Source: Setoptus koraiensis
Taxonomy: Eukaryota; Animalia; Arthropoda
Reading direction: 5' to 3'
DNA: 64,000 nucleotides
Assembly (NCBI GenBank): GCA_048013815.1
Contig: CM106585.1
Coordinates: 22,072,001 to 22,136,000 of the forward strand
Shown here piece after piece: positions 9,149-55,900 of this stretch. Each line of letters starts with the position of its first letter. Within the stretch, counting starts at the first letter, position 1. The translations under genes and the position numbers were made by a program. A model generated the notes under the pieces. It was not told the origin of the DNA, did not search any database, and was given only the letters and a program-made list of their open reading frames with translations.

Positions 9149-9223
<75 letters not shown>

Positions 9224-16800: not shown

Positions 16801-17503
16801 CCTGTTCTTGCTCTCTTTGCGAGAGATTATCTCAGAGCATTCCTTATTTTGGAAAATAGCGCATCACAACTTCACTCATCAGATAGAATGACCAGTTGAC
16901 ACGAATGACCACAAGCCAGCGGACAGCGACAATCCACCATTGTGAAAGTAAATCAAGATAGCAAAAAATTTAAAACAAATATATCTTATTTTATTATTTC
17001 TTAATCTCTCAATACTATATTCTCAATTTTGTGATGTTCAAACATAATAGGTATTATTCTAAATATTCTTCCTATATCTTCTTTCTTCGCATAATTTATA
17101 TCAATTGATAGCATTTTCGACTCACGCAATTCTTTTGTCGTATGATTTAACTTGGTGCTTTGTAATTAATAGGTTAAGGTCACATTCACTAAGTTCGTTT
17201 CTCGGTATTATATCGACAATTTACGTACAAGTATTAGTAGTATTATTAATTATACAAGTAAATTGTCTGACGTAGACATAATTCACCTTATCACGATTCA
17301 TTTGAAGTATTATGATTTAAAAATCTGAGCTGACATTGACTACACTCTACTCTCTGGTCACACTTATGCGAAGAGCTAAAACATTTCATATTTTCACTTG
17401 TCTGTGGAAGTAGATTTTGTACTTGTTTTTAATCAGCAGTCTAATACAGCTGATTTGCGAAACGCCATCAATAGAACTTGAAATTTTGTCTCGAGCTTTG
17501 GTC

Positions 17504-23919: not shown

Positions 23920-24301
23920 TGATAAAGTAGTATTAATAATGATAATGATTATTAAATCGATATGATGATAGTATAATAATAATAGTAATAATAGTAATAA
24001 TAATAATAATAGTGATGATTGAGCCCCTTCCTCAAGCTTTTACTGATATAACAATAATAGCTCATGATAATATCGCTAGTCGGCGCTTGAATGTCAAAAA
24101 ATGTCTGCTTTTACTAGAATTCTGTGTGTCTGAGTCAGTGTGTGTGTGTCTGTGTACGTGTGTGTGTGTGTGAGTGTGTGTGTGTGTGTTTTGTGTGTGT
24201 GTGTAAATTTCAAAGACAGTTTGTGTGAGTTTGTGTGTGTGTGTGTGCGTTTGTGTGTGTGTCTGTGTGCGTGTGTGTGTCTGTGTGCGTGTGTGTGTCT
24301 G
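23920..24301. repeat. Compound (TAA/TAG)n and (TG)n simple repeats upstream of MED13
   Basis: AAT/AGT-rich run at about 23920-24020 and interrupted TG tract at 24121-24301, visible directly. Confidence 0.85.
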
Positions 24302-32755: not shown

Positions 32756-35013
32756 TTAATTTAATGGAGCTTGCTGAGTAATCTCTATTCTTTGCACGGT
32801 CATATTTGGATCCATCATTGTAGCCTCCTGAATTGCTTCAGCCAGAGCTAATTCGTGATCGACAGGATCGCCATCACTCTTTATAGTAATTTTGTGCTCG
32901 ACACGCGTTTCAACCATGCCATCTTTTTCCATCTTATACTGTTTATCGTGTTTGGTGAAGGAAGATAAATTGAGATTGTTACTATCATATATGTGAACCA
33001 ACATGGAGCCTGATCACGACTTCGCTAAGTGTATTGATCTTTTTTTGATTGATGTTACTTACTGTTAACGTTTCCACAGTATGAGTTTTACTAGATATAG
33101 TTTGAGACCTAACCATATCATCCTCATCATCTGGAGAAGGTGACTTGAGTGAAGCCACTGATGAGTTGGCAAACGATTGCGGCGGGGCTAAACAACTATC
33201 TGAATGCTTTGTTTCACCTCTTGAGTAAGAGTAGGACGGCTGTGGTATATGAATGTAAAAAAAAAGTGGGATGTCATTAGATTTTTACGAAAAATTTCAT
33301 GAGCAAAACCATTACTGGATCGTGGAGATCTTTAAATGTTTATCACGCACGCACCTTTTTCTCCATGAATGCTGCTTTCTTCGTCTCAGAGGTAGTTGCT
33401 GGCATGGAGGTTCTGTCAGTGGTATATTGTTGCTGGACTCTCTGAGGTCCTATGGATGATACAGGGGCAGCACCATATCTAACCATCTCACTGTAAATGA
33501 CAGGGGCGATATCATCGTAGTTACCACTGATAATCATATCTGACTTTCGATTATTATTTTCATAAACAGATTGTCTAGATAGTGATTCTTTGCTCTTAAA
33601 TCGATGGATGGGACTTTTTCTTTGCTCTTCTATCTTTTTCATTTCCATAGGTGGTAGAACAGCAACACCGCCTACAGGTCTTCTGTAAATAGGTTTGTCT
33701 TTCTTATCACTAAGTGATTCGTCTGTCAAGGACGGTGAAACACTATCATGAGTAGTAATGGAATTATAAGATATTGCATTGCCAGAGAGTGTTCTATCTG
33801 TTGCTTGACGACTGAGCCTGCCAGTGGCATTGTCTTCGTCATATTCAGGAAACTTTCGTTGACTTTTCACACTGTTGATATCCATTTCCGCAGATCGTCG
33901 CCCATTGTGTTGTCTCTCTAAAGTTTGATTGGCATTGTCGGCAGCGTGGTCGGTCCAGTTTCTGTTGCTGAACGTCCTCTGGAAATCAGGATGGGGTCGT
34001 TTAATTTGCATGCTGGCTTGTTTCGATTGGTGTTGTGTGCGGCCGGAGTATCTAAATTTTGATCCGAATTTGGGTAATAGAATTCTAGTTTTATTTGGTT
34101 CGTCTGGTGTTGTCAATCTGAAAAAGGTGTGATGTTCGACGCAGGTCTTCCACAATCGTTTAGCGGCAGCCAGATTGGCCAGCTTGAAGCCTATTGTGCT
34201 CTCGTATTGATCGAATTCGCCCGGCCTTATTCTAATATAGAAACTGTTTCTCTTATAGGATATCTTCAATATCTTAGGCCAGGCAAATCTATTTATTCTC
34301 AATCGGTCAATGTAAACAAATAGACCTGATGCACACACGCCTATGAGTATATCCGCTCCGGCTGAGTCGCTGGCCGAATGTAGATGCACACCGTACATGG
34401 CCAATCTGCGTGCATTCTCTAAATAGTGTATATCTGCCTCGGCCGATGTTTGTCCCTTATGTTGCTGATGCAATTCGGCCACTCTCACAACAAGCTCTTG
34501 AGTTTGGTGAGGTGCAAATTGAAAATCGTTGAGATAATCCGGACAATGGTGTTGCTGAGGATTGTAGTCGCCCAATTCTGATTGCACCATATAGGAGCCT
34601 AAGGCGGCGTAAGTAACTAGAGAGCATGGCAGCTGGCCGGTGAGTATATCCCGGCGAACCTGTAGACAGACAAAATATCTGGTGATGTCCTCGTGCAACT
34701 GTGATGGGTCCGGCGGGTAAAATTTGAGTTCGAAATACAATTGCACTGGCTTGCTGTTGTTGCGGTTGTTGTTTTGGTGACTCTTGAGCTGTCTGCCGAT
34801 GGGCTTTTCGTTGTTGAGCCAATCTTTGCCCTCGTTGGGGCACGACGACGACGACGCTTGACCAAACGACAATCCAAAATAGTCTTTCTCCAACAGGTTG
34901 ACATGGTCGCACACCTTGTCGAACAGCAGTTGACCCCTGGATTTTTTTATTTTGTCGATATGCACCTCTACGTCTGTGTTGTCCAGCAATACGACTTTGA
35001 TTGTTTTCTTCAT
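32756..35013 (-). CDS. cora: Protein 4.1 / coracle homolog (FERM, FA, 4.1 C-terminal domain), about 672 aa, 3 exons
   Basis: Exons 35013-33355, 33239-33063 and 32938-32756, all phase 0. FERM ([65 protein letters not shown]), FA ([11 protein letters not shown]) and CTD ([55 protein letters not shown]). The true start is uncertain. Confidence 0.92.
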
Positions 35014-35040
35014 GACTCTTGCTCAGATGCGGCTGGTGCT

Positions 35041-35120
35041 GTCGATGTTGTTGCCGTCGATGTTGTCGTCGATGTGGCCGTCGATGTTGTCGTCGGTGTT
35101 GTCGTCGATGTTGTTGTTGT
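35041..35120. repeat. Imperfect 12-bp tandem repeat (GTCGATGTTGTC)n just upstream of cora
   Basis: About 6 imperfect copies; they encode TTTS/TTTP/TATS on the minus strand. Confidence 0.8.
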
Positions 35121-35412
35121 GAACTGGTGCGCTCCAAAGTTGCAACCGAACCGCCGAGTTGTAGTCGCTTCGATGCGCAAAACCCAACTGAATTGTGTGC
35201 TCGCCATTTTCGCTTCGATGCGCACATTCTTTCGCTCATACGCTCACTTGTGCGCCACTGCGCAAGGTGGGCGTACATGGGCATTGTATGAGAAACACCG
35301 CCCAACAAGAAAACCCGCAACGTGTCCGCCCACCAATTTGCTACCACGCTCTAGTGCGTATTCACATCCCGTATCCCGACTGAACATAACCGCCGGCCCG
35401 TGCAATGCAGAT

Positions 35413-35435
35413 CCGCCGCCGCCGCCGCCGCCGCC
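35413..35435. repeat. (CCG)7 trinucleotide run in a GC-rich probable promoter/5' region
   Basis: Read directly; lies about 400 nt upstream of the cora ATG. Confidence 0.85.
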
Positions 35436-36870
35436 CCGGACCGCATTGCTGATAGCGGCACAAACGGTAGTGCGTCTGCCGCGGGAAATCAGTCTCGCCA
35501 AAATGTCGGTGAGTCACTGATTACTAATCACTGACGATGCTACAGTAAATACATTTATGAATGAGTAACTAATTGTCAATCGCACCACAATAATAACAGT
35601 TAGCCAATTAAAGTTGGGGCGCAAAACTTGAAACTTTTCATGCCTCAAAACGCGATTATCCTGGCACGAATCCCTGTCACAACAATTCACTATGTACACA
35701 TCGATTCACGTTATAATTTAGAAAGCGTGTTAGCTTTCAGTTTTTTATTATCAGTCATTTAATCGTTTGTTTGTGTGGAATTAGGACGCGCCACATATCC
35801 GTCCATCGGTTGTGGAATCAATTTAAGATATACATGACTAGCATGGCAGACCAATCTTGGAGTCGCAGTCCTAAAATGAGTAACGTACATGTCAATAATG
35901 ATTAGCACATTTCAAGTCAATCATGTCGTATTTTGTCGTTGCTAACAATAGTAAGTAAGTTGTAGGCTCGAAAAATACGAATTGGTCCCACATATTATAC
36001 GCTTTTAACACTGAGCAAACAAAAACGTGTTTACCTAAGACAATATTTACTATCTAGCGAGTGTCTAATAATTGGCTAGATATGCGCCGTTGATGCTGTC
36101 GATCGGATACAACTGTTTCTCTCATCTCTCATCTTGTGTATTGACTCGACTAGCACAGTAATCATAACAACTATTATTATCATGTTAGTGATGTAATCAG
36201 ATAACATCCTAATGTTAGCTGATAAAACAAAGTTATGTAATAATATTATGTCAGTTATTCGTCGTGTCAACTTGGATTGGCTAGCAATAAGAGCTAGCTT
36301 ATGCTCAACTACCATTAACCACCAACTTTGAGAGCCATGTATTTTGACTCACACATATACATACATACATACATACATATATAAATATATGTATAGATGT
36401 AAACTAAAATATGTGTGCCAAGTTTGGTAATTCCATCATCGACATCTTGTTTTTGATCGCCAACATTAACAGCAACAACAAACAGACAGCAATTGTCATT
36501 ATTACTATTATTATTGTTTTTACATCCTCTGTGTGGAACCATAAGCTATTTGCACTATACTTGTAATGATGTAATGACGATTTCAACTTTTCTGTCATAT
36601 AACCAGCATACGTTGGGTTTGTTTATGTGATAATTATTGTATAATGCAATGGATTGTTGCGTCACTAACAAGAGATTTAGTTATGTGAGTGAGTTCATCT
36701 AAACTTTAGTTTAAGTGAACAGTTTTATGAGCAGTAGTGGTGATGTTGGTTTTTTGTGTGTGACCATACCAGTTGACTATAGTGACATAATAATACTTTT
36801 TACTTTACACATCGCATATATGTGACGAAGATGATTATTATTATTATTATTATTATATTGAGCCCATTGA

Positions 36871-40571: not shown

Positions 40572-41861
40572 ATGGCCCTCAATCTAGCTCTGTTGAGCTT
40601 TCAAGTCAACGAACACAAGGGACTGACATTCGACCCAGAGCACGCTAAGATTATAAACAACCAAGACCCATTATCTAATCCCATACAGCCGGTAGTGCTG
40701 GCTTGCCAGAGAACAGTTAAGACTTGCTTTTTGGATACAATGTACGACACCTTCTTTTGTGCCAAAGAATCTATCAAGAATTTCAATAATAAGGTTATTC
40801 TAGCATATTTGGTCAGTTCTAACACTATCGCTGGCGGCGGCATAGTAGATGGAGCCACCACTACTGTGGCCACCATAAAATATTATCAGCTTTGCCCGGA
40901 CACTAGCTACAAAGTCAGTATTGAATTAGAGCAATTGTATGACACTAGGCTACCCTCTACAGATCCAAACAGCTTTAAGATTGGTTTGACTAATAAGCGC
41001 GTCGAAAAACTCGTAGAATCTCTTGACAAAGCCTTCCGACTGGATGGCAAAATTGAGCATATACCCCTACTTAAGAGAGGCCGACTAGATAAGCCTCACT
41101 ATCTAGTATCAAGCGACGAGCGAGTTCTAGAGTATGACTTTGATAAAGTTGTCTACGATCAAAAGAGCGATTTTCAGGATATTAAAATTTTACACTCGCC
41201 AAGTCTAGGAAATGTCTTACTATTGGACAAGCTACAAAACTTAGCCGAAAAAGATCTACCCTATACGTTGGCTCTAATGAATTATGGCAAAGTCAGCTAT
41301 ACTGGCAAAGAAATACTCATACTAGGCGGCGGAGATGGAGGCCTGCTGCACGAGTTGCTCAAAGAAAATCCCAAAATGGTAACCATGATTGACATAGACA
41401 AGGGCGTTGTCGACTCGTGTCGTGAACATATGAAACCATGCGGCGACAGTATGAAAGAATTGGAGGGGCCTCGGCACAAAATTATTATTGGCGATTGCTT
41501 GAAATATCTTAGGGAGTACGTTAAATCAGAGCGCAAATTTGATGTAATCTTCAGCGATCTAACGGACATACCTATAAGTGAGAGACCCGAATTATTAACA
41601 TGCTTCTCTCCTACGTACGCTAGCGACAATCCTTGGCACTTTATTGAAGTTATATTTTCGCTGTCACTTCGCTGCCTCAAACCCGATGGTCTATATATGA
41701 ATCATGCAATAGGTTCGGGGTCTATAGATGCACTTAAAGCCTATGAAGAGTTCCTAGATAAATCACCCATCAAGGTCAAATATGAGCGTCACTCCGCGTA
41801 CGTTCCATCATTCATGGAGGATTGGGTCTTTTATCAAATTAGCAAGCTGCCTACAAAGTAG
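40572..41861 (+). CDS. SMS: Spermine synthase, single exon
   Basis: SSDERVLEYDFD, SDFQDIKILHSPSLGNVLLLDKLQNLAEKDLPY, ILILGGGDGGLLHELLK, FDVIFSDLTDIPIS and YVPSFMEDWVF. The extended N-terminal domain and LTDIPIS motif indicate spermine rather than spermidine synthase. Confidence 0.92.
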   Translation: MALNLALLSFQVNEHKGLTFDPEHAKIINNQDPLSNPIQPVVLACQRTVKTCFLDTMYDTFFCAKESIKNFNNKVILAYLVSSNTIAGGGIVDGATTTVATIKYYQLCPDTSYKVSIELEQLYDTRLPSTDPNSFKIGLTNKRVEKLVESLDKAFRLDGKIEHIPLLKRGRLDKPHYLVSSDERVLEYDFDKVVYDQKSDFQDIKILHSPSLGNVLLLDKLQNLAEKDLPYTLALMNYGKVSYTGKEILILGGGDGGLLHELLKENPKMVTMIDIDKGVVDSCREHMKPCGDSMKELEGPRHKIIIGDCLKYLREYVKSERKFDVIFSDLTDIPISERPELLTCFSPTYASDNPWHFIEVIFSLSLRCLKPDGLYMNHAIGSGSIDALKAYEEFLDKSPIKVKYERHSAYVPSFMEDWVFYQISKLPTK

Positions 41862-41876
41862 ACTGGATAAAGTTTA

Positions 41877-42713
41877 TCATTCTGACACAGTTACCTGTAG
41901 AGTCAAATGTGTCAATTTCAAACAGATGTTTGGTTTCAACCATAATAAAGAAGAGAAAAATGATTTGATTTTTCTACGTTCGATAATTATATTCAATAAT
42001 ACCGTCAATACGCAAAACTTGTATATCGAGCTATCGGCAAATCGATTAGATAGCCTCTGCGCCTCCTTGGCTTCCTTTTCGTCTAACGTTTGCCGAAACA
42101 CAAGCGTTTTAATCACCACATTTGTATGGGATATCATGACCTTGAAAAGCAGTTCGAGCTCGCTCATTTGAGAATCCTCGACTTCAATATTCTTTGGCTC
42201 GGACATAGCAATCACTGGGTCCAGGCTCGCTGCTAACTCATTGATTTCTTCTGCTGACTGTATCAATAATTTCTTACAATTGAGAGCAACTTGACTTTCG
42301 AGCAGTCTGAAGGAGCGAGCCAATCCGTTCTCATGTTTAAGGTTGAGAATCATACTCCGGCTGGCATTTTTCCTCAATTGTTGCTCAAGTTGCAACAATT
42401 TATCTGTAAAGTCAGGCTCGCACAACGAATGAACCGTGCCAGCTTGCTCGACCAAATCCTTCAACGCCCGGATATCATCGATTCCATTTGTGCTGTGGAT
42501 ACACTTGTTGAGCATATCATTTTTCTTCACAGTCAATTCATAGGTGCGATCGTTTCGGAGCGCTATCTCTGCGAATTTTAAGAACGCAGGAATTGTGTCC
42601 ATTGTTTTTACCAAGGAAATGCATCGCTTTTTGGTGATTGCTAGGGCGTCGGAAGAGTCAGTTAAACAAACACAAACGATGGAGACAAAAGCGACTAGTT
42701 TCAAACGAGCCAT
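41877..42713 (-). CDS. Tandem family copy A: signal-peptide protein, truncated/divergent (278 aa)
   Basis: Signal peptide MARLKLVAFVSIVCVCLTDSSDA. Shares the ALKDLVEQAGTVHSLCEPDF.DKL and F..QVAL.CK..L motifs with copies B and C but lacks their C-terminal half. Confidence 0.8.
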   Translation of the reverse strand: MARLKLVAFVSIVCVCLTDSSDALAITKKRCISLVKTMDTIPAFLKFAEIALRNDRTYELTVKKNDMLNKCIHSTNGIDDIRALKDLVEQAGTVHSLCEPDFTDKLLQLEQQLRKNASRSMILNLKHENGLARSFRLLESQVALNCKKLLIQSAEEINELAASLDPVIAMSEPKNIEVEDSQMSELELLFKVMISHTNVVIKTLVFRQTLDEKEAKEAQRLSNRFADSSIYKFCVLTVLLNIIIERRKIKSFFSSLLWLKPNICLKLTHLTLQVTVSE

Positions 42714-42865
42714 TTTGCTCTTCTCCTTTCGGAACCTTTAATTTTTGTTTTCGATGCAATCAATTTTTCGTATTGATTAGAAAGAAATCGGGAGGAATAT
42801 TCACTGCGACGCAAATGTGTTTGTGCTGGCAAAATCATTATCGTCCACATAAATTTTACACACAT

Positions 42866-42975
42866 AAAATAACTAAGCTTTCGAAGCTTCATACCTATCG
42901 CTATTTATACTAGAGGTAGAGAAGCTCGTTTCACTTTAGGACTGGAATCGGCATTTGGTTGTCTATTTTTAAAAG
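42866..42975 (-). promoter_or_regulatory. TATA + Inr promoter cassette of copy A
   Basis: On the minus strand, CTAGTATAAATAG (42913-42901) is followed about 35 nt later by the Inr-like TTAGTT. The same cassette precedes the other copies. Confidence 0.6.
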
Positions 42976-43177
42976 CGGTCATGACTCATGATTCATGAGG
43001 CTGCACAACAGTCGATCTTGACCGATCTTGTTGTGAGTTAGTAAGTTCGTCAGTTTGTCAGTTTAGTTATACTAAATGAATTTGGGAATATTCGCGATTG
43101 TTGTCGCAAACGATCGCATGAATTTGACAGATTTTTATTCTTATATAATGATAGACGGGATAACTTTGCTCTTCTCA

Positions 43178-44605
43178 CTAGTACTTGGGCTTTCGCCGGA
43201 GTAAATAAGCAGTAAGATAGCCCAACAGCACTCCAACAAGCACAGATACTGCAATATGCCAGCCAACGTGGGCCGCATGATGAGAATGGGCCGCAATGTG
43301 ACTAGTTACGTGACTTGCGACACCATGACCAGTCGAGGTCACTTCAGTACCACCGAATTGGACGTCACCCTCGGGATCCTCTTGATTTTCCAATATTGAT
43401 CGCTTAATTGATTCGTCAAGAATGTTCACTTTGACATATTTCGACACTACAAGCTCTGCCTGACTACCCAAGCGTCTCTGCAGGAATCCGTTGACGCCAT
43501 CAGTTTGTGTGTAACATTCGAGATTGGGGTCAAACGAGTTGAAATTGTCGGCTTGCTCAAATTTATGGGCCGACTCTCTTAGATGGTTCTCTTTGTCGAC
43601 ATTGACGGTGAATAGACTTTCGTCGTACTGCTGCTCCGTTTTCATTTTATCAATAACATCGCTCTCTAAATCTAGCTTAACATCCGCAAGAAGGACACCC
43701 TGACAGAATTGCACGGCTTTGATCCATTTCTGGACCGTTGGATCGGCGCTCAGCTTGTCATCTAAAGTGTCAAAATCCTTTCGTGCAAAATATCCTTTCC
43801 AGGCCAACCGAGCTATTGTGTATATCGAGCTTTGGGCGAATCGATCAATCAGCTTGCACGCCCTCTTGGCTTTCAAAAAATCATCTACCATGCCCTGCGA
43901 ACTCAATGTCAGACCTATCGAAAACTCAGAATCTGGTGTGGGTTTCAGCGATTCAGTAAGGAGGAGATTTTCTACTCTTGTGAACACATTGGGAGTAAAT
44001 TTCTTGGCGAAATTCAGCAGGAGGTTGCCTTTTGGAAGATTCTTAGCCTGGTTTTCATCAGCTTTTGTGTTTTTCTCCTCCAACATAGCAGTCACTGTGT
44101 TGATACTGGCGGCTACATCAGCATTACTATTTTCTGCTGATTGTAGTTTTTGCACCAATGATTCCTTACAAGTGAGGACGACTTGACCAGCAAATAATCG
44201 GAAGAAGTGAGCCAACCTGTGCTTTTGTAAGCGTTTGAGATATTTACTCTGGCTCGCATTGGCCTTCAATTGCTTGTTGAATTTCACCAGTTTATCCGCA
44301 AAGTCAGGCTCGCACACAGAATGAACCGTGCCAGCTTGTTCGACCAATTCTTTCAGCGCCAAGATGTCAGCGAAACCATTTTTACTGTGAACACACCTGT
44401 TGAGAATGGCGCTTTTCTCATCGCTCATTGCTTCTGTGCGATCATATTCAAGGGTTATCTCCGCAAAGTCGACAAATTCAGGAATCGTTTTCATTTTTTT
44501 AACCAAAAAACTACACCATTCTTTGCTGACAGCTTGAGCGTCGGAAGTGTAAGCTAAGCAAAAAAACGCTATAGAGACTATAGCGAGCACTTTCAATTGA
44601 GCCAT
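43178..44605 (-). CDS. Tandem family copy B: signal peptide, helical Cys-containing ectodomain, His-rich stalk, C-terminal TM (475 aa)
   Basis: The real start is most likely ATG 44605 (MAQLKVLAIVSIAFFCLAYTSDAQA), which aligns with the paralog starts, rather than the ORF-track start at 44722. It ends ...HSHHAAHVGWHIAVSVLVGVLLGYLTAYLLRRKPKY. Confidence 0.85.
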   Translation of the reverse strand: MAQLKVLAIVSIAFFCLAYTSDAQAVSKEWCSFLVKKMKTIPEFVDFAEITLEYDRTEAMSDEKSAILNRCVHSKNGFADILALKELVEQAGTVHSVCEPDFADKLVKFNKQLKANASQSKYLKRLQKHRLAHFFRLFAGQVVLTCKESLVQKLQSAENSNADVAASINTVTAMLEEKNTKADENQAKNLPKGNLLLNFAKKFTPNVFTRVENLLLTESLKPTPDSEFSIGLTLSSQGMVDDFLKAKRACKLIDRFAQSSIYTIARLAWKGYFARKDFDTLDDKLSADPTVQKWIKAVQFCQGVLLADVKLDLESDVIDKMKTEQQYDESLFTVNVDKENHLRESAHKFEQADNFNSFDPNLECYTQTDGVNGFLQRRLGSQAELVVSKYVKVNILDESIKRSILENQEDPEGDVQFGGTEVTSTGHGVASHVTSHIAAHSHHAAHVGWHIAVSVLVGVLLGYLTAYLLRRKPKY

Positions 44606-44740
44606 TATGCTGTTCTTTTTTTCAATCTTTGGATTTTTATGCTTGATGGAATAATGTTTTTGAATTAGCATACACGGAGCTTTCTCTAGGATAAAAATTT
44701 TGTTAGATTTGCCGGAAAACACTCGGTTCCTTTCTAGTTA

Positions 44741-44830
44741 CAATAACTGAGGCATCAAAGCTTCATACCCGTCACTATTTATACTAGAGATTGGAAAGCT
44801 GGCTACATTTTGGAGTTGCTTGGGAGTTTA
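44741..44830 (-). promoter_or_regulatory. TATA + Inr promoter cassette of copy B
   Basis: Minus strand: CTAGTATAAATAGTGAC (44787-44771), then TCAGTTATTG (44750-44741), the arthropod initiator. Confidence 0.65.
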
Positions 44831-45613
44831 TTTATAAATGCTTCAAAGATAGACATAGTTCCGAATGTCTGCCTGGACCCACATACTTTCACCTTTGCAC
44901 AAAATGAACCTGCCTTCATACCCGTCACTATTTACACTGGAGCTCGAGAGGCTTGTTTCTTTTTCGGATCGGAGTTGACGTTTGGGTGTCTATTTTTACA
45001 CGCAATCATGAGGCTGCAAGATGCTCACACTTCCAACTGGACCCACATTCCAATTCTATAGAACTGATATTTTTGTAGTTTTGTTTATCGATTCTCTCTC
45101 CAGCTATAACTTACAAGCAAAGCGCCTGCTGAATTCATGTAAACAAACCATGAGGGCCAAATTCGTTCACATAGGCCATGAACAGTTTAACGCTGCAGAA
45201 GCGATCGAGAAAGTTATGCAAGTCTTTGGACTTGCCAAATTAACCAGTATTAGTTGCCAACCAGTAGTAGTTAACAAGTACAATCGCCTTCATAAACATT
45301 GTGGAAGGGGAAAAAATGGGTATTGTATGGAACAGCGCCACACTTTGATTTTGATGAAACTTCATACGTGGGGCCCGCAGGGCCCCCTGACAACAGTTTG
45401 AGTGGTCCGGAAGTGCGGAAACTTCCGGTTCCTGTCTTGCTAGAGGCAATTGTAATTGTACTATAAAAACTATAAATAATTGTAATTGTACTATGGCAGA
45501 ATGACACAATTGTTACGAGACTGTCTAGCTTTATATATTTTTGGGATTTTGATTGAAATTGAGCTGAACGAAGGAAATGTTTATTGCATTGTAGCATGAA
45601 TAGGACAGACGTT

Positions 45614-47092
45614 TTATCGGATAGACAGTTGATAAGCCCGATGCTCTTCCCATACTCTCTTTCCATGCTTGAAATGGACGAAAATCAAGAAAGCCAAAAA
45701 AGCAACTGCACCAGCAATCAAACCTATCAAAGCACCTTTGCTAAGATTCAGAAATTGATGAGAATGGGCTGCCACGTGACTGGTTGCATGACCTGTCATT
45801 GCATGACCAGTGGAGGTCACTTCTGCACCACCGAATTGAACCGCATTTTCGGGATCATCATGATCTTCCGCCAGCGATCGCTCAATCGATTCGTCGAGAA
45901 CATTTACTTTGAAATACTTGGACATAGCAAGTTCAGCCTTGCTACCCAAGCGTCTCTGTAGCCATCCGTTGACTCCGCTTGTTTGTGTGTAACATTTGAG
46001 ATCGGTGTCAAACGAATCGAAATTATCAGCTTGCTCGAATTTGTGCACCGGTTTCCTCGATTTATTTTGTTTGTCCAGGTTTACAGTGAATAAACTTTCG
46101 TCGCTCAGTACCTCTTGGTCCAGTTTTTCTCTTACATCTTCCTCTAAATCGACATGGGCTTTTATGAGCAGAACCCCCTGACAGAATTGAACGGCTCTGA
46201 TCCATTTCTGGACTGCGGGATCGCTGCTCAGGCTTCTATCTAAACTTTCAGCATCGTTTCGTGCCAAATATCCTTTCCAGGCCAAACGAGAGATTGTGTA
46301 TAGCGAGCTCTGGGCGAATTCATCAATGAGGTTGCAAGCCTTCCTGGCTTTTACAAACTCATCTACCATGCTCTGCGAGTTCAATGTTATACCCATGGAA
46401 AACTCGGACTCTGGCGTGGGTTTCAGCGATTCCGTCAAAATGAGATTCTCGACCTTTGTGAACTCATTGGGGTTGTATTTCATAGCAAGACTCAACATAA
46501 TGCGCGAGCTCTTTGATAGATTCTTCTTGGCCCAATCTTCATCGCGTTGGGCCTTTTGCGCTTCCGACATGCCAATCACTGTATCAATGCTGGCTGCTAG
46601 GTCAGCATTACTATTTTCTGCTGATTGTAGTTTTTGTGCCAAAGATTTCTTACAGGTGAGAGCAACTTGACTAGCAAATATTCGGAAGAAGCGAGTCAAT
46701 CTATTCGTTTGTGTGCGTTTGAGATATCTACCATGGCTGGCATTATCTTTTAATTGTTTGTGGAATTTCACCAATTTATCCGCAAAGTCAGGCTCGCACA
46801 CTGAATGAACCGTGCCAGCTTGCTCGACCAATTCTTTCAGCGCCAAGATATCAGCAAAACCATTTTTACTGTGAACACACCTGTTGAGAATGGCGCTTTT
46901 CTCATCGCTCATTGCTTCTGTGCGATCGTTTTCGAGCGTCATCTTCGCAAAGTCTTTGAATAAAGGAATCGTATCCATTTTTCTTACGAAAGGACCACAC
47001 CATTCTTTGCTGATAACGTAAGCGTCAGAAGTGTAAGTTAAACAAACACAAACCATGATGACAATAGCGAGCACTTTCAATTGAGTCATCAT
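45614..47092 (-). CDS. Tandem family copy C: signal peptide, helical ectodomain, His-rich stalk, C-terminal TM (492 aa)
   Basis: Signal MMTQLKVLAIVIMVCVCLTYTSDA. Colinear with copy B over its whole length with 7 mature Cys conserved; TM GALIGLIAGAVAFLAFLIFVHF. Confidence 0.88.
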   Translation of the reverse strand: MMTQLKVLAIVIMVCVCLTYTSDAYVISKEWCGPFVRKMDTIPLFKDFAKMTLENDRTEAMSDEKSAILNRCVHSKNGFADILALKELVEQAGTVHSVCEPDFADKLVKFHKQLKDNASHGRYLKRTQTNRLTRFFRIFASQVALTCKKSLAQKLQSAENSNADLAASIDTVIGMSEAQKAQRDEDWAKKNLSKSSRIMLSLAMKYNPNEFTKVENLILTESLKPTPESEFSMGITLNSQSMVDEFVKARKACNLIDEFAQSSLYTISRLAWKGYLARNDAESLDRSLSSDPAVQKWIRAVQFCQGVLLIKAHVDLEEDVREKLDQEVLSDESLFTVNLDKQNKSRKPVHKFEQADNFDSFDTDLKCYTQTSGVNGWLQRRLGSKAELAMSKYFKVNVLDESIERSLAEDHDDPENAVQFGGAEVTSTGHAMTGHATSHVAAHSHQFLNLSKGALIGLIAGAVAFLAFLIFVHFKHGKRVWEEHRAYQLSIR

Positions 47093-47240
47093 GCTGTCCT
47101 CTTTCCTGGGCGTCTAATTGTTGTGTTCGATGCAATGAATGTTTTCAAATTTGCAGAAAAGGAGCTTTCACTACGACCTAAATTCTGTTAGATTTGCAGA
47201 AAAAACACTTATCGTTCCTAGAACTTTACCTTTCAAGTTA

Positions 47241-47345
47241 CAATAACTGAGGCCTCGAGACTTCATACCTGTCACTATTTTTACTAGAGATTGGGAAGCT
47301 CGCTCACATTTTTTTGAAGTTGATTGGGAGTCTATTTTTAAATGC
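47241..47345 (-). promoter_or_regulatory. Promoter cassette of copy C
   Basis: Minus strand: CTAGTAAAAATAGTGAC (TATA variant), then TCAGTTATTG (47250-47241), identical to the copy B Inr. Confidence 0.6.
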
Positions 47346-47387
47346 TATAAAGAGACTGTCAGACACACATAGTTTCGAATGTCTGCA

Positions 47388-47477
47388 TTAGTCTTTGCTG
47401 ATAGCTACAGAGTCGGAGGAGTAAATTAAACAAACGCAAACGACAGAGACGATAGCGAGCAGTTTCAATTGGGCCAT
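47388..47477 (-). pseudogene. Tandem family copy D: pseudogene fragment (signal peptide then stop)
   Basis: ATG 47477 encodes MAQLKLLAIVSVVCVCLIYSSDSVAISKD*C. TAA replaces the Trp of the paralog ISKEWC and the rest of the gene is deleted. It has its own cassette upstream at about 47631-47730. Confidence 0.8.
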
Positions 47478-48024
47478 TATGCTGTTATTCTTTCCGAGCT
47501 TTTAAAATTCGTATCCGGACCAATCAATGTTTTCGAATTGATAAGAAAAAAATATGCGGCATCGCAAATTCGTTTGGATTTGCTGGAAAAACGCTCATAG
47601 TCGACATAAGGCCCACCTTTCTAATGAGCTAACTGACCTCGCGAGCCTCTCACCTGTCGCTATTCATACTGGAAGTCGAGAAGCTGTTTCATTTTCGAAT
47701 TGGAATTGGCATTCGCGTGTCTATTTTTAAACGCATTCTCTCTAGAGTCTAGAAAACAATTTTGAATCAAATGGAAAAGGTGCAATTGTGGCAGCGCTTA
47801 GAAATAGACTCAACGTAAGTGTGATAGATTTTGTTTATTTCTTATTTGCACATATTGTGCGTTGAGTAGGGACCAATGAGCAATAGGTATAGTGGACAAA
47901 ACAAGCGGCCACCAATAAAATTTATTGGCCGATGACGGACACTGATCTACTGAGTGAATTGATTAGATTAAATTATTTAGAATAATGAGGCCAATAATGA
48001 CCGACAAGCACAACCATAGACTGT

Positions 48025-49662
48025 CTAATCAATCTTCTTGTACTGGCTTCTTTTGCCTGTGAGATGGGACGCAGAGTCTGTATCACAGGTCAGTATGTTG
48101 CCTCTCTTATCCGTCAATTGTCTTGTTCTCAATGGCGCGTCAATTCTGTCTTTGACAGTCATGATGGCCTGACGAGCGCCCGACCATTTGTTGGGTCCCT
48201 CCAATCGATATTGATAGGGCAGGCAGGGTCCGAAGACCATGTGAAACCAGAGAGCGGGATCCTTGAATAGATATTTGTAGACTTGGGGCCTGCAGCCAAC
48301 TTGTTGCGCCAATTCGTCCATGTAATTAATCCAGTCCACCTGTAATGTGTTGCGCGGTCCGCCATAGTAACGAGATTCTAGATATTTGTGTTTCTTTTCA
48401 ATGTCCTTGAGCATCTTTTGCTGGCTGGGCAATTTTAATTGGCCCGACATCAACAGCGAATACCAGCGTGCATGCATTTCGGCAATGGGAAACAGGGCGC
48501 CAATTGGTTGGGCCAGCGCAATGAAGCCCAGCGTGTGCGAATGCGGCCCCAAATTGGGACTGAACACATATTTGAATAGGTCGACCTTGTTGTCTTGCAC
48601 GGGCACAATTGATTGATCGATGAAGGGAAAACAAACCTTGTAACCGGTGGCCATAATGATGGTGTCACATTTGACCTCTTGACAGGGCTCGTTTGGTGCG
48701 CCCTCGAATATGACGCCATCTTCCGTTATTTCCTTGATGTTGTTTGTCAGCTCAATGGTGCCGGACAATATACGATTTGGCAGGGCGTCGTTCACCATGA
48801 CATGCTGCTCGAATATCCTGTGTTTTGGCTTCAGACGGTACCGTTTGTGATCGACGCGCTGATTAATGTAAGCCTCGCTAGTGGCACACACAATCTTGTA
48901 GGGCACATAATTGAATAATTGATTCATGAATCGGCGCAAAAACAACTGATCGAACGGCTTTCCGTCGGGGCCCACTCTGTGCACAACCCAAGCGCCTCTT
49001 CTGGTCGACAAATACACCTTCTTGGACACCATACTCAGCTCAACGGCCACATCGCCGCCAGAGTTGCCTATTCCGACCACGACAACGGTTTTGTTCTCGA
49101 AACCGGCCGGCTTCTTGTACGAATGCGTGTGCATGATCTGTCCCTTGAATTTGTCCTGGCCCGGAAACGAGGCCCACGACGGGGTCACGTGATGTCCGGT
49201 GCACACCATAACACCGTCGAATGTTTCGGTGAATTGTTGCTTTGTCAGCATGTTCAGCACGTCCACTGACCAGCGCCCGTCCAAATCGAAAGTGTCCGCC
49301 TTGTTGCATTGCAGCACCTTGTGCTGAAACAGCATCTTGTCCACACAACCCACCTCGGTTGCGTAATCCTCCAAATATTGAATCATCTTGCTGTTGTGCA
49401 TATAATTGGGATATTCCGCTTTTGGGGGGAAATCGCTGAAGGCGGACATTTCTTTCGACGAATTGATGATGGTCGCTTGGGCCACCGAGGCCAGACCGTC
49501 GATGTCGTCGTCGCGGTACCGCCATAAGCCGCCGAATGATGTGCTCATTTCGTATATGACATAATCTAAATTTTGTTCCTTGCACGCCTTGGCCGCAGTT
49601 ATGCCGCTAGCGCCGCCACCTATGATACAGATGCGTTTTTGTTGTTGACTGAACGACGTCAT
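48025..49662 (-). CDS. Flavin-containing monooxygenase (dimethylaniline monooxygenase, FMO5-like), single exon
   Basis: FAD motif IIGGGASG, FMO fingerprint FKGQIMHTHSYK, NADPH motif VVGIGNSGGD, ATGY, and GPCLPYQYRLEGP.KWSGARQAI. Confidence 0.95.
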   Translation of the reverse strand: MTSFSQQQKRICIIGGGASGITAAKACKEQNLDYVIYEMSTSFGGLWRYRDDDIDGLASVAQATIINSSKEMSAFSDFPPKAEYPNYMHNSKMIQYLEDYATEVGCVDKMLFQHKVLQCNKADTFDLDGRWSVDVLNMLTKQQFTETFDGVMVCTGHHVTPSWASFPGQDKFKGQIMHTHSYKKPAGFENKTVVVVGIGNSGGDVAVELSMVSKKVYLSTRRGAWVVHRVGPDGKPFDQLFLRRFMNQLFNYVPYKIVCATSEAYINQRVDHKRYRLKPKHRIFEQHVMVNDALPNRILSGTIELTNNIKEITEDGVIFEGAPNEPCQEVKCDTIIMATGYKVCFPFIDQSIVPVQDNKVDLFKYVFSPNLGPHSHTLGFIALAQPIGALFPIAEMHARWYSLLMSGQLKLPSQQKMLKDIEKKHKYLESRYYGGPRNTLQVDWINYMDELAQQVGCRPQVYKYLFKDPALWFHMVFGPCLPYQYRLEGPNKWSGARQAIMTVKDRIDAPLRTRQLTDKRGNILTCDTDSASHLTGKRSQYKKID

Positions 49663-52600
49663 CTTGCGTATGGTTTCAATATGTTGCGTTATTGTGTAAC
49701 TTTATCTGTTTATATCTAATGTCTACTATGTGTGCCGATGCGGCCCCACTCGAATGCTGCCGACACTGTCAGAGGGATCGGGTATTAATAGTGATAATTA
49801 GGCTGATATTTGAGCTGATATTTGAGGTGCTGGCGAGACAGGTGAGCCAGATATTTCGTTTGGTGGCTGTTGCTGGCGTGTAACACGATGATGTGAGTGG
49901 TTTGCACTGACAACTGTCAGTGAGCGACTCTGAGCGATTGTTTGATTGTTCAGACTAAATCGATTGTCCCGATGCGCCGACAACGATGTTGTGTGTAAGC
50001 CTGTTGTTGTTGCTTGTGTTGTTGTTGTTGCTGTTGTCGTAGCTACTGTTGTTGTCGTAGCAGCTGTTGTTGTCGTTGCTGCTGTCGTTGTTGTTGTTGT
50101 TGTTGCGAGATGGCGAGTTCGGTTGTACCCAGAGAACCGATTGAGAATATTCGCAATTATTGTCTTGTTGACTCTCTTCTCCTCTCGACTGTTTGTTTGT
50201 GTGTCACTTTAGGTGGGCGTACTCACTACCTATCGCTCTATCAGCGCCAGCAACAACGACAACAACACTACGGGGGAAAACAATAAATCGGTCGGTCTTG
50301 CCAACAGATGATGTGGACAGAACAATGAACAAAAGACGCCGTTGCTGCGACGCTGTTTGCTTCGGATCCGTTCAGTTCGGTTCGGTTCGGCTCACAACTT
50401 TACTCTTGCTGACTTGTGACTGACTGACTCTCGAATGATGCTGACTGACTGTCTAACCAACAACAACGACAGCAACAAGTGATTCACAAACAATGCTGAG
50501 CTAACTGGTAGTAAAAGTTTGTCAATGGGCTGGCTTGTATGTCGACTAACTTGACCCGTTGTGACGTAACATTGGCTGCGTGTGTGTGTGTGTGTGTTGC
50601 CTTGTTATTATTCTTCTGTTATGGCTGCTGGTGCCGCCGATTATTACAACGCATAAATAAACAACAGACAATGTCTGTTGTCGTGTGTAAGTGGACTGCT
50701 TTCCTTGGGCTGTTCGTTGCCTTGACGACCACTAGCTAACCGAGATTGTCTTGCGATTCACTGGCTGAGTCGATTTGAAGAATACCCTTGTGCCAATGTG
50801 ACGTCGTTAACTGCTGCCGACACAACTGCAAACACTGCAACTACCGTCGCAACAACTGCACTTGTTGCAACTACCGTCACAAGTAGTGACCATAAACTCG
50901 CTGGCTCGTCCCACTAGCCAATTAATTGAACAACTTTTGTACGCGAACGCACAGCTTGTGTTGGCAAGTAGGTAAGCTCAAGACTCAACTGGCAAAAGAA
51001 AGTAAGAGGCAGGGAGAGAGAGGGAGCGAGAGAGGGAGAGGAAGGCAAAACAAACTTTCACTAGTCGGCACTGCCAGCCAAGGCTAATCTAAACGACGCC
51101 ATCTAGCTTGCCAAAATTAACACCCAAATCTTGGCAAGCTCAATAGGAAGCTACTGCTACTTTTTGGGGCGTCCGTCCGACGCTGAAATCACCTTCGAAC
51201 ACTTCTTAAGGTGAACAGCAATCTAAGCGAGTGAGTTATTTGTTGGTACAAACACACAAACACATTGATGCCAACACAAGATTCTCGTATCTCTCGTCAT
51301 GTTGGCATCGATGCAAAAAACTCAGGCAGAATGCGGATACTAATTATGGGATTGATAGCAACACCGACTGACGGATTCAATGTTCATCCAAAATTGTTGC
51401 TTTGTGTTATTTGCCAACACTTGTTGTTGGTGGTGCTGTCGTCGCTTTTGCTGTTGATGTAGTTGTTGCTGTTGTTGATGCTAGTGTCTCTGTCGCTGCG
51501 ATAATACAATTATCCGATCATATTGCCTCGGCGCCAACGAAAGACGGATAAGCGATTGTATGCAATTGAGACTGGCAATTTTAGAGACAGTCGACATGTC
51601 TTTGTTGCTAACAACGACACTCTACTTAATACAATCTCTTGTTATCATCATGTTTCATTTCGTTTCGTCTATCACCCATTCATACAGTGGTTGCTTTCGC
51701 CGACTTCAAGTCGACAACAACCATACATTACAAACAAACATTGATAATCAATCATTGGCTGCCGGGAGCTCGCATGATCTATGCCAAAATCATGGCTAAT
51801 TACATTGATCAATGTCATGAGCCCAAGTGATTTATTACTTTTATTGGCGTTGATTGTAACTCATTCATTTCATGAAGTTTTACAAATAAGCTCGACTTGA
51901 GCATCATCTCAAGCTGCGAGACTTTTGAAGATTTATTCTCTATCTCTAGAATCTGGAATCTAGACTGGTTTATTGCTAGCACCCTCCATGACAAATGAAG
52001 GCGACCAAAAGTGAGCCTATTCAACATACTTACTCATGCGATTTTCGCTTCGCGAAAATGCATTTCCAGACGCTTTACCTCTAGACTCTAGAGTCTAGAG
52101 ACACTTCACTTCTAGAATACTATATTACGTGAGGAGTACACCCACTCGGACAACTTGACAGTGGTGATATTTTGCGACAAAGAGCTGCTACATCACGTTG
52201 ACATTGATACAACAAATGTGCTCATATGTGACAAGTTGCTATCATATAGCTCTCACTATATGATAGCAACTTGCACTTAGCATACACTAGTTTGAGTAAT
52301 CGCTCGTAATTGCTGTGACGTCGCAACACCAACTTTGCACTTTGTGTTTCTTATCTCTTATAACGACTAACTCATATACTACAAGATAATATCAAAATTA
52401 TCACCATTCCGCACTATTATCATCACTCTTTGACCCCTGTGACCAGGCCCCTGCGCTGACTTAAGTCACATGCAAACGCTACCCGGACAGTAAATGATGA
52501 TTTCGCTAGCATAATTGAAATTATCAACTACTGGGAGTGCGGAAAATAAATTGCCAGTCGAGCTGGCGATGTGGAAGGTGAGCAAAGGTGTTAAAGAAAA

Positions 52601-52917: not shown

Positions 52918-55900
52918 TCAAGCTAACCCTTGAACATCTAGAGCCCATGAGCATTGTATGGAACAGGTCTTGTCAGCTAGTATTGTGTTTAGTTGATTGG
53001 ATTTCATCGCTTGCAGGCAGTTTATTTTGATGGTCCGGCAAACAGGCTACGTGTGTTCCGATGGACAATTCCAGAGAATAGAAAAGAAGAGCAAAAGTGG
53101 AGGAAATTGAAGTTGTTAAATTACGTGATCAAGTTCTACGTGATACAAAATAAATATCATTCTTGAGTTGTTAAGGCAGTTCCTGTCACTAATAATAAAT
53201 ATTTTAGATAGGCAGTACTATAATTAAACAAAGTTACAATTCAACTGCAAAGATGAAGCCTATCGACAACAAGCCAGGTATCCATTTCAGTAGAGACAAG
53301 TGATAGTGTAAAGGAATGTTCCCAAGTTGACTTGTTTGTATTGCTTCACTCTGTACCGCTCAATACCAGTTTGACCTTGCGACTCAGTCTGCACACTAGC
53401 TAGCGACAAACGCTAGCTATTTGTTGGTCAAGGTTGATCTGTTTCAGTTGCGAGTGCGATCTCTTATGGCCTGAAATCGGATCAAGCTGAAATCACTGAG
53501 TTAAAAACGCTACTTGGGGTGAAAAGAAAAACTTGTTTGCGAAGTTAAAATTTCGAAACAAGAAGTGAAGACGATCTCGCTCGAGCGCCATCTTTCTCAA
53601 CGAATTCCAGCTATCGATGTGTCTTGTAACCTGAATTAGATTATCACTACTTACGCCCTCAAGTGTACAAGTACAGCTCCTGCATGGACTAATACGCTTC
53701 GATTGGCCGAGATCGAGTTTTTGCTTATCCACTTGACAAGATTTTGTATTTTCACGCCAAGCACTCAAATCCATAGTAGGTAGACTGCTGCAAGGAATTC
53801 TCGGATTTCTGCAAATGACAATCCCATGAGGGATATCATCAAATTTGTTGAGTTATTGGAAGAGAAGTTGCGACAAACGATTAGTTAATTTTTCGTGCGA
53901 AGTCAGACAACAAATGTTAATACAGAACAATTTCTTACAGGTAATGATCGCTTATGTCCATGGCGTTCTTTTGTATGGCGTCTATAGAGTCTGATTGTTC
54001 GCAAAACACTTTTGCCAGAGTCATCTTTCTTATTTCGGCCAATTGGGCAGGAGTGAATCTTATCCAAGGATTGTTTGTCTCATGCCAGAATCTATCACAG
54101 CGCTTCAATCTTGAGAATTGCATACCAATAATGCATCCGAAAGTCGGTCCTGTTCATAGTTTTGTAGAGACATTTTATTTTTGTTAGTCAATGAGTTCAA
54201 GTTATTACATCATACTATGATGATCATAGTGAGAACCTAAACAGGTTATGGTGGGGTCAATATTTCAACTTACCAATTATACCACCGTGTACAGGTGTCT
54301 CACTCATACCTGCGCATATGGGAAGATGAACGATGTTGTAGATGGAGGAAATAATTAGCAAAGAATATTCAGAATTAATTAGTCTTTTTGCACTATGTTA
54401 CAAGGCATTATAGAGAGAAAAAGTTTTGTATACTAACCTCCGGGGAAAAGGTCTATGTCGTCGACAGATCTGAACAGGTAAAAAGCAGCAATTAGAGGGA
54501 TGTTATTTGGTGGTTAGTTTTATAGCTCTTGAGTCCAGAGTCTTAACACTCGGTGACAATTTAAATATCCATCAAGTACTTACTCATATAGCGATGCAAG
54601 ACGTTTAACCAGTTTCACAGGTATCTCGGTGGTGAGATCGTCGAAAGTTTTCGCTTTCGTTAAATTGCATTTTACTCTGTAGCTGTTATAACTGGCTATG
54701 CCGTGATCACGCGCTCGTTGTATGTTCAAAGATATAAGATCCATGCCGGAAAATGGTTGTTTTGGCTTCTCGAACAGGTGATTTGTTAGCTCTTCTGTGA
54801 TGGCATTGTCCAGAGTCTCAATGGGTGCAGAAACGATTCCTCTCAGTATAGAGTCTATCAAATTGGCTGTGTACAATTATTGTAATAATTAAAAGTCAAA
54901 ATAGAGTTAAAACTTAGAACTTCAAGTGAGAAGGACGATTTTCTTCACGACTACTGATTGTACATAGACTTACGTTCTGTAAGGATCCTTTGTGAATTGA
55001 AAAAGGCCTTTCTCAGTTGGAATGGCTTGCTAACAGGCTTGTATTGTCTGTCTAGCAACGGGAAGGCACTCCTAATTAAACTGTGGCCCATTCGGAAAGC
55101 GGCTGCCGCGAACTCGGTAAATATGCTTGGACTGCAAGATTCGTCGTACCCGTCATAGTATCCAACTGTCGGGTATTTTGTTAAGTGAGAGACACATCAG
55201 GCGTTATTATCCATAGACAACAACATATATGCAGAATAGATACGAGTTTAAGGCGAATTTGTTACAATACTTACCGTTCTTTAGTATGAGATCATACTTG
55301 CTCATATAATCCAATCCCAATAGACGGGGCGCAAATTCATTGTAGGTGATTCGTTGATTTATCGCAGCGACAATACGCCTGCCATGTTGATACAACCTCT
55401 CGTCGCTCCAATGTTTATTGATTGCTTTCAAGCGGTCAACAATGGAGTTGTGCAGCCTCAAGAATACCGTATGTATGGCTGTTAAGCCGGGTTGTTCACT
55501 GGCCCGCTGATCGCCAGCATGAAAACATAATCCGTTTGGTGTGACACATTCAGGATTGGCGCGTGTTGTTGGCAAGATCTCTCTGTAGATAAGCGCTCCT
55601 TGATTCGACATGGGATGCTGCGAAGAATTGAGTCGACCGCCCGAGAAAGCTCGCAATGACTTAGCCTCACAATTGTCCGAGCCGTAGATGTTAGAGGCAT
55701 CGACGTAAGCTGTCAAAGCATTGAATTGTTGTCGTGGCCCGAGACCCGTTTGACCGTTCATACTGCGTACAAAATGCAAACATTTGGCCCCTTGCCCTGT
55801 CAATTCTTTGGCTCTTGCAGATTGAAAATAATAATCATTGTCGGGTATTCTAATAGGCAGACAATCTCTATGTACTGACCTCTGTGAGTCGCATGGGCTA

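Follow-up and report, generated by a model that had tools for sequence, protein, structure and literature searches.

A tandem array of putative secretory-pathway glycoprotein genes was found on the minus strand of the window, i.e. the whole stretch of 64,000 nucleotides of contig CM106585.1 that was analyzed in this study. The array occupies positions 41877-47477 and consists of three paralogous open reading frames (ORFs), referred to here as copies A, B and C, together with one gene stub of 29 codons. In our judgement these genes probably belong to a lineage-restricted glycoprotein family whose members share a new helical binding domain braced by disulfides, with two functional, membrane-anchored copies (B and C), one decaying copy (A) and debris of further duplications. 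The family is previously undescribed, being absent from named databases and without a counterpart among solved folds, and it is probably restricted to mites of the eriophyoid lineage.

Gene copies and the predicted fold of their products

The original prediction had listed three intronless paralogs of 278, 475 and 492 amino acids (aa) and a pseudogene fragment, and all four were recovered where it had placed them (Table 1). The term intronless applies to the coding regions, which are single ORFs in all three copies; those of B and C match full-length relatives over their entire length. As the genome is eukaryotic, the start of copy B was set at its ATG and an extension of the ORF to an upstream GTG at 44722 was disregarded. 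Pairwise alignment gave an identity of 67-68% between B and C and of 43-45% between A and either of them. The three copies match each other in tblastn with E values of 1e-52 to 0, and the stub matches all three at about 2e-6. Past the in-frame stop of the stub (47388-47477) no coding homology to the family was found, and the promoter block of C comes directly after. A weak tblastn match elsewhere in the window (9635-9793, E 0.005) was found to be full of stops and unrelated when inspected.

The predicted layout of C comprises a signal peptide (residues ~1-24), a helical ectodomain (~26-320), a stalk, a transmembrane (TM) helix (~447-477) and a tail of about 20 residues. The C-terminal hydrophobic segment of B lies at ~444-470 and is followed by 6 residues only. 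On the Kyte-Doolittle scale this helix scores 2.25 in B (444-470) and 2.83 in C (447-477), and no C-terminal TM helix was found in copy A by hydropathy. The stalk is conserved in B and C, carries their seventh cysteine, is uncertain in the AlphaFold2 (AF2) models and leads into a His-rich juxtamembrane stretch. At the other end of the proteins, a hydrophobic stretch of 23-25 residues leads into S-D-A in A, B and C and into S-D-S in the stub, with a 19-residue hydrophobic window at residues 1-10 scoring 1.7-2.2 in all copies. Nearly all full-length members listed in this study have such a hydrophobic N-terminal segment, its sequence being variable. Every copy has a signal-like N-terminus; the earlier description of the signal peptides as near-identical was too strong, as this region is only about 60-65% identical across the four copies.

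The cysteine scaffold was found as originally proposed, with four cysteines common to A, B and C (residues 32, 72, 99 and 147 of C) and three more in B and C only (253, 304 and 367). Six of the cysteines are invariant in 27 diverse members of the wider superfamily described below. An N-A-S sequon occurs at residue 116/117 in all three copies, and its N is nearly invariant in the 13-member subfamily alignment. Apart from the cysteines and hydrophobic positions, the near-invariant residues are a K following Cys4, a Q preceding Cys6 and a single G. Taken together, these features suggest that B and C are type-I membrane glycoproteins with their bulk on the luminal or extracellular side. The secreted or type-I character that had been proposed is consistent with the signal-like segment, the sequon and the cysteine scaffold, whereas the anchors of B and C set them apart from classical soluble effectors.

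The AF2 model of full-length C, based on the 13-sequence alignment, has a predicted local distance difference test score (pLDDT) of 67.7 and places the TM helix at residues 452-491. The ectodomain of C modelled alone from a 58-sequence alignment is predicted with higher confidence (pLDDT 92.3, predicted TM-score 0.87) as an all-alpha structure with two short strands.

We propose that the signal peptide is cleaved and that a helical domain of about 290 residues faces the extracellular or luminal side, where the six invariant cysteines would form three disulfide pairs and one conserved site would carry an N-glycan. The conserved stalk and the His-rich stretch would hold this ectodomain on the single TM helix, which would end in a short, unconserved tail. 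The ectodomain may serve as a binding module rather than an enzyme because no conserved polar catalytic constellation was seen in it; enzymatic activity is unlikely, as besides cysteines the near-invariant polar residues come down to one Lys and one Gln. A rigid core (C residues ~57-160 and ~250-310) would be preserved, whereas paralogs would diverge fast in their surface segments (~160-245 and ~310-350) and in the mode of anchoring. The resulting variants would be membrane-bound, would carry a hydrophobic segment at the extreme C-terminus, or would be anchor-less and soluble.

No known domain was recognized in these proteins, in agreement with the original prediction. Pfam gave no near-threshold match for A, B and C, for ten distant members or for all 58 members of the family, and the weak Pfam matches were each confined to a single member among the 58. 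No homolog was found among PDB sequences, where the best E value was 0.21 with phmmer and 0.29 with the broad profile. A Foldseek search with the full-length model returned no match, and the search with the ectodomain model likewise gave none in PDB (best E 0.39, TM-score at most 0.2) or in BFVD (best E 0.4). The literature on eriophyoid effectors contains no description of this family.

The top Foldseek rows, all non-significant, repeatedly contained NheA, XaxB, PaxB, MakA, AhlB and SmhA. Alpha pore-forming toxins of the ClyA/Hbl/Nhe type are elongated helical bundles with a small beta element, as is the ectodomain model, and the Pfam family Bacillus_HBL matched one of the 58 members weakly (E 0.027). 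We rejected this relationship as generic long-helix noise, the structural matches having E values of 0.3-2, TM-scores of 0.11-0.19 and root-mean-square deviations of 25-33 Å; unlike the present family, these toxins have neither disulfides nor TM anchors.

Relatives and proposed origin of the array, and decay of copy A

The genes of the window mark it as animal DNA; they include those for GET4, a forkhead protein, Med13, a BTB protein, a FERM/4.1 protein, spermine synthase, FMO and a haem peroxidase. Nearly all of them are uninterrupted ORFs; that of Med13 codes for 2108 aa, and the FMO, a chelicerate FMO5-type protein with a length of 545 aa, is likewise encoded in a single ORF. Among named proteins, the FMO is closest to those of mites (Tetranychus, 59%; Brevipalpus, 57%; Halotydeus; Oppia), with spiders and horseshoe crabs coming next, and dozens of nameless proteins from assemblies and metagenomes are closer than the named mites, at 70-87%. 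Intronless genes account for more than 80% of genes in Aculops lycopersici and 75% in Floracarus perrepae, compared with 18-25% in three other tabulated mite species, and among mites extreme intron loss has been reported for the Eriophyoidea only (PMC7738191; bioRxiv 10.64898/2026.08.24.746826). From the mite-like FMO and the single-exon genes we infer that the window comes from an eriophyoid mite.

The closest relative in our searches is the Logan assembly SRR33593474. A word-indexed search with copy C returned only seven proteins, 34-46% identical to it; the five of these whose contigs were read, as well as two later matches (P0002 and P0009), all come from this assembly. When 1.84 billion representatives were scanned in full by HMMER with a 13-member profile, 58 matches were obtained, 17 of them at E values of 1e-30 or below. 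The sources of 30 of the 58 were checked and were found to be Logan, JGI or ENA, the proteins being nameless or labelled 'hypothetical protein'; none of these 30 came from NCBI or UniProt, where T. urticae and the other annotated arthropods are represented. Nine nameless proteins were found in a word-indexed search with a broad profile. In the metagenome scan, the subfamily profile found no relative and a profile of the conserved branch described below found one locus.

At least 12 paralogs are present on at least nine contigs of SRR33593474, several of them as tandem pairs. No neighbour recurs beside them, which indicates that the family is dispersed in this relative rather than kept in one conserved cluster. 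Paralogs at L002 (7065-8445), L001 (6826-8466) and L012 (3681-6077) adjoin genes for a cathepsin-L-like peptidase C1, RINT1/TIP1 and dymeclin. Three of the 58 matches from the HMMER scan are proteins of 161-167 aa (P0019, P0020 and P0021) that consist of a signal peptide and the N-subdomain with Cys1-4 and share a C-terminal motif of their own; judged by this layout, they would be small soluble secreted proteins and the most effector-like members of the family.

A more distant branch (the P0024 group; HMMER E 3e-23 to 1e-9) consists of type-I proteins of 515-583 aa in which the TM segment is near-invariant and most members end in Y-K-P-x at the extreme C-terminus, a motif that is missing from the window subfamily. 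Comparison of the window subfamily with this branch by hhalign gave a probability of 99.6% and an E value of 1.6e-24 over 291 columns. All three members of the branch whose contigs were read, from three different samples, are the sole family member detected on their contig. There is a further branch of 580-606 aa, and C-terminally anchored proteins of 583-589 aa are encoded on a metagenome contig beside ILK, eIF3j and other animal genes. The contigs read from six samples or loci are gene-dense with long uninterrupted ORFs, an intron-poor look that is partly due to ascertainment as gene callers on raw assemblies recover only intronless genes. On the sequence evidence, the window family branches off from a wider superfamily whose conserved members occur in several other intron-poor animal genomes. 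The family, which the original prediction had taken for lineage-specific, thus reaches beyond a single species.

In the relative, the orthologs of FMO and spermine synthase are direct convergent neighbours 725 bp apart (locus L009, 445-2163 and 2889-4187), with no homology to the family between them. A, B and C form one clade in the maximum-likelihood tree (support 100/99), nested among the paralogs of the relative, and their nearest neighbours in the tree (P0002, P0009 and P0001) are at other loci. The synonymous divergence (dS) is 0.67 between B and C and 0.85-1.2 between A and B or C, compared with 1.3-1.9 for the orthologous neighbouring genes. The monophyly of the three copies and a B-C divergence below that of the neighbours indicate a lineage-specific duplication. 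The simplest account of these sequences is that one member moved into the spacer between FMO and spermine synthase after the species split and was then duplicated locally; this insertion reading is based on two genomes, with a deletion in the relative as the alternative history. No meaningful inverted or terminal repeats were found around the insert. The position beside a 'detoxifying FMO', which had been taken as a clue to function, lost its force with this comparison, since an array inserted after the split from the nearest sequenced relative makes its neighbours irrelevant to its function; under either history the linkage to FMO is not conserved.

An upstream block of about 300 bp is common to A, B, C and the stub in the alignment. 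In the three copies the block contains TATAAATAG, followed 35 nt further on by a TCAGTT-type element; these correspond to the TATA box and initiator (Inr) that the original prediction had regarded as typical of strongly expressed tissue-specific genes. The pair is present in A, B and C, and in the block of the stub the TATA-like element is altered. The TTAGTT of A is one mismatch from the TCAGTT of B and C, and its promoter block is about 70% identical to that of B. Retention of the box and the TCAGTT-type element in all three copies, despite near-saturated synonymous sites between A and B, suggests some constraint. Of the 11 upstream regions checked for close-subfamily members of the relative, a single one (L005b) also has the pair, and it occurs in none of the four distant family members checked. 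Going by these counts, the TATA/Inr pair is a feature of the window array and not of the family. As it is shared through recent duplication and is rare in the relative, it argues only weakly for strong tissue-specific expression.

Upstream of C there are, in this order, a promoter block, the stub, a junction (47361-47386) and the promoter of C itself. A relic promoter block and a junction matching that of C also occur upstream of B, where the stub is absent, and the B and C units repeat at a spacing of 2478-2484 nt. The relic beside B indicates that the partial duplication of promoter plus stub is older than the B/C duplication of ~2.48 kb. The array would have grown from A first to B/C, preceded by a partial duplication of the promoter and 5' end; duplication of the ~2.5-kb unit and, later, loss of the stub beside B would have followed. 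The stub, the relic promoters, the unit duplication and the decaying copy A agree with the tandem birth-and-death pattern described in the original prediction.

Both the intact pair and copy A were examined for selection by region. Between B and C the nonsynonymous divergence (dN) is 0.21, giving a dN/dS of 0.31. In their core (alignment columns 61-120) dN is 0-0.04 and dS 0.2-0.55, which argues for purifying selection and not merely recent conversion. Since dS in the 100%-identical protein core is not 0, gene conversion was rejected as its only cause; the patchy low dS allows for some conversion. A single window of 30 codons had dN above dS, which was not significant. Based on their long open frames, purifying selection, promoter blocks and poly(A) signals, B and C would be functional genes.

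Copy A differs in most of these respects. Its first ~180 residues are 43-46% identical to outgroup paralogs, against 45-50% for B and C, and the identity falls to about 20% in residues 181-320, with dN close to dS in the C-terminal third. Out of 32 family-conserved columns in residues 181-320, 23 are lost in A, compared with nine out of 36 in residues 26-180. This copy is missing Cys5-7 together with the stalk and the TM anchor, and no frameshifted remnants of the missing C-terminal half were found in any frame. The branch of A in the maximum-likelihood tree has a length of 1.23, against 0.21-0.29 for B and C. By its sequence, A is a 3'-truncated, degenerating edge copy, which may persist at most as a soluble protein of the N-subdomain only. 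Its nearest AATAAA or ATTAAA is only at +232 nt, within the spermine synthase gene. As the stops of A and the convergent spermine synthase are 15 bp apart (41861-41877), their 3' ends must overlap antisense if both are transcribed. The poly(A) hexamer of spermine synthase, 83 nt downstream of its stop, lies within the coding region of A.

Table 1. Positions of the array, its flanking genes and the conserved-branch loci
Feature	Position	Strand	Remarks
Spermine synthase	40572-41861	+	Ortholog in L009, 80% protein identity, dS 1.3
Putative lineage-specific insert	41862-47942	.	Between spermine synthase and FMO; 6.1 kb against a ~650-bp spacer at L009
Copy A	41877-42713	-	278 aa; truncated and degenerating; N-subdomain (Cys1-4, NAS sequon) kept
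Promoter block of A	42855-42984	-	TATA-like box from 42909; TTAGTT with its A at 42874
Poly(A) hexamer of B	43134-43139	-	39 nt past stop
Copy B	43178-44605	-	475 aa from ATG; intact; layout as C
Promoter block of B	44729-44804	-	TATA-like box from 44783; A of TCAGTT at 44748
Relic upstream of B	44847-45011	-	Second promoter block 44914-45011 and junction 44847-44872
Poly(A) hexamer of C	45580-45585	-	29 nt past stop
Copy C	45614-47092	-	492 aa; intact; predicted type-I membrane glycoprotein layout
Promoter block of C	47229-47346	-	TATA-like box from 47283; A of TCAGTT at 47248 (alignment, repeat families, motif spacing)
Gene stub	47388-47477	-	29 codons of signal-peptide region; in-frame stop
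Promoter block of stub	47560-47740	-	TCAGTT retained; TATA-like element altered
FMO	48025-49662	-	Ortholog in L009, 87% protein identity, dS 1.9
Conserved-branch locus L006	10001-11587		
Conserved-branch locus L007	10001-11578		
Conserved-branch locus L010	8001-9533		

Possible roles of the family

The rate at which the family evolves bears on its possible roles. Between species dN is 0.07 for FMO, 0.12 for spermine synthase and 0.41-0.46 for the nearest pairs of the family, whose proteins evolve 4-6 times faster than those of the neighbours while dN/dS is still about 0.3. The between-species dS is saturated. The signature is fast and relaxed, without demonstrable diversifying selection, and at such a dN/dS purifying selection prevails.

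We regard it as unlikely that these proteins are salivary effectors secreted into the host plant, with the anchored members acting after shedding or as precursors of soluble forms. A secretory signal combined with fast evolution, the lineage-specific expansion and relocation, the many anchor-less members with the three short ones among them, and a probable source in a plant-feeding eriophyoid mite, from a group without known effectors (PMC7738191), would fit such a function. However, the intact copies B and C retain a TM anchor and only the decaying A is without one, a dN/dS of about 0.3 gives no sign of diversifying selection, and the older branches are conserved membrane proteins whose TM segment and cytosolic tail are more typical of cell-autonomous roles. 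The adjacency to FMO that had motivated this idea is not conserved. Somewhat less likely is an organelle-resident membrane family (endoplasmic reticulum, Golgi, endolysosome or secretory granule) that handles cargo or lipids, the array then being a redundant duplication of housekeeping type. The almost invariant TM segment of the 515-583-aa branch and the Y-K-P-x tail motif of most of its members, which we take to resemble a YxxPhi tyrosine-based sorting signal, would suit this role, as would a His-rich juxtamembrane stretch able to sense pH or metal, but the window subfamily has lost both tail and motif, and fast evolution, free expansion and loss of anchors would be unusual for housekeeping proteins of organelles.

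A role in recognition at the cell surface, in reproduction or immunity (gamete-surface or pathogen-recognition proteins), appears quite improbable as a specific assignment. Lineage-specific copy number, the elevated protein rate and the coexistence of anchored and soluble forms are compatible with it, whereas Foldseek against PDB and BFVD gave no structural match to a known gamete or immune fold; moreover, it is a sub-case of the family reading that we favour and not a true alternative to it. Scarcely credible is the view that the locus is non-functional DNA, whether as an array of decaying pseudogenes or as a mobile element's gene that is domesticated or resembles a viral envelope gene. The degeneration of A, the stubs and relic promoters in the array and a type-I helical glycoprotein layout with a superficial likeness to viral fusion proteins are what it can draw on. 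It is countered by the long open frames, purifying selection and poly(A) signals of B and C, by the lack of terminal repeats around the insert and of a structural match in BFVD, and by conserved relatives in ordinary host-gene contexts.

Several points also weigh against the preferred reading of a lineage-restricted, largely anchored glycoprotein family with a new binding domain. Signal peptide, TM helix and glycosylation were called from hydropathy, motif rules and AF2, and the case for a binding module in place of an enzyme is argued from the absence of conserved polar residues. The absence of the family from annotated arthropods rests on the full HMMER scan with the subfamily profile, the broad profile having been run as a word-indexed search only. 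Lastly, the C-terminal anchor is missing in about 8 of about 20 close members, so that part of the family may be secreted in soluble form and hence have an effector-like role.

Some known systems resemble the family in part. The Osiris (DUF1676) cluster is an insect-specific tandem family of proteins with a signal peptide, cysteines and a hydrophobic anchor whose function was long unknown. It is comparable to the window family in its lineage restriction, signal peptide, cysteines, anchor and tandem arrays, but the size, the cysteine pattern and the predicted fold differ, none of the 58 members matched DUF1676, and the window family seems to belong to mites, not insects. Odorant-binding and chemosensory proteins are soluble helical proteins of about 110-150 aa with a fixed cysteine pattern that are tandemly diversified and act by binding, not catalysis; they offer a functional analogy only, there being no Pfam or Foldseek link to the ectodomain. 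Salivary effector families are mostly small soluble proteins, and salivary expression or secretion has been shown for named Tetranychus and aphid examples. Tu28/Tu84 and SHOT of Tetranychus and the effectors of aphids and the Hessian fly are, like the window family, taxon-restricted, tandemly arranged, fast-evolving and domainless proteins with a signal peptide (in part after PMC7738191). In contrast to them, the intact copies of the window family are anchored and about 480 aa long; its fold is large and conserved, and it has an older branch that is conserved as well.

The eriophyoid lineage has lost most conventional chemoreceptor and detoxification genes. Eriophyoid mites are major crop pests and virus vectors that suppress plant defences or induce galls, and none of their proteins is known to be an effector or to interact with the host (PMC7738191). 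The family offers a concrete set of candidates for host-interaction, sensory or reproductive biology, being multigene and fast-evolving, with a confident fold prediction, a copy number that varies between close species, and switching between anchored and soluble forms. As a speculation, and on the whole an unlikely one, the ~290-aa all-alpha domain with its three presumed disulfides could be a new extracellular fold that originated in eriophyoid-type mites or occurs only in them. Its fast offshoot, variable in copy number and with repeated anchor loss, would then form a toolkit of soluble secreted effectors and anchored surface receptors or precursors for sensing or manipulating host plants. 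Even with a mundane role, the family represents a new domain family to be defined in Pfam/InterPro. The locus is also a clean example of how an array is built in a compact, intron-poor genome through partial duplications of promoter and 5' end, duplication of 2.5-kb units and decay at the edge.

Other features of the window

Scans of the 64-kb window for transfer RNAs and Rfam families were empty. The forkhead ORF (6911-8611, plus strand) breaks off within the forkhead domain, at position 74 of the 88 in its profile. The rest of the gene probably lies beyond an intron or a frame change, which would place it among the few interrupted genes of the window. Beside it, a region of about 9 kb (8612-17503) contains no ORF of 150 aa or more, an unusual length given how compact the genome is; the region may be the regulatory desert of this developmental gene. 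Two minus-strand ORFs of 249 aa (27502-28251) and 334 aa (29186-30190) had no Pfam match at E values of 0.001 or below and are possible additional orphan genes. A second long ORF (34457-35347) overlaps the 5' part of the FERM/4.1-type gene (33343-35013) on the same, minus strand and may reflect a frame change or an upstream exon read in a different frame; an ORF on the plus strand (34741-35520) was also found there.

The haem peroxidase (55207-60387, minus strand) is encoded by one ORF of 1726 aa, with three separate stretches matching the peroxidase domain (E 7e-248). The best-scoring stretch (769-1106) is preceded by ~760 residues to which Pfam assigned no other family. Microsatellites of the types (AG)n, (TG)n and (TGT)n occur at 9151-9233, 24123-24303, 25075-25148 and 50002-50105, the last of which creates a spurious poly-Val/Ala ORF at 49946-50212.

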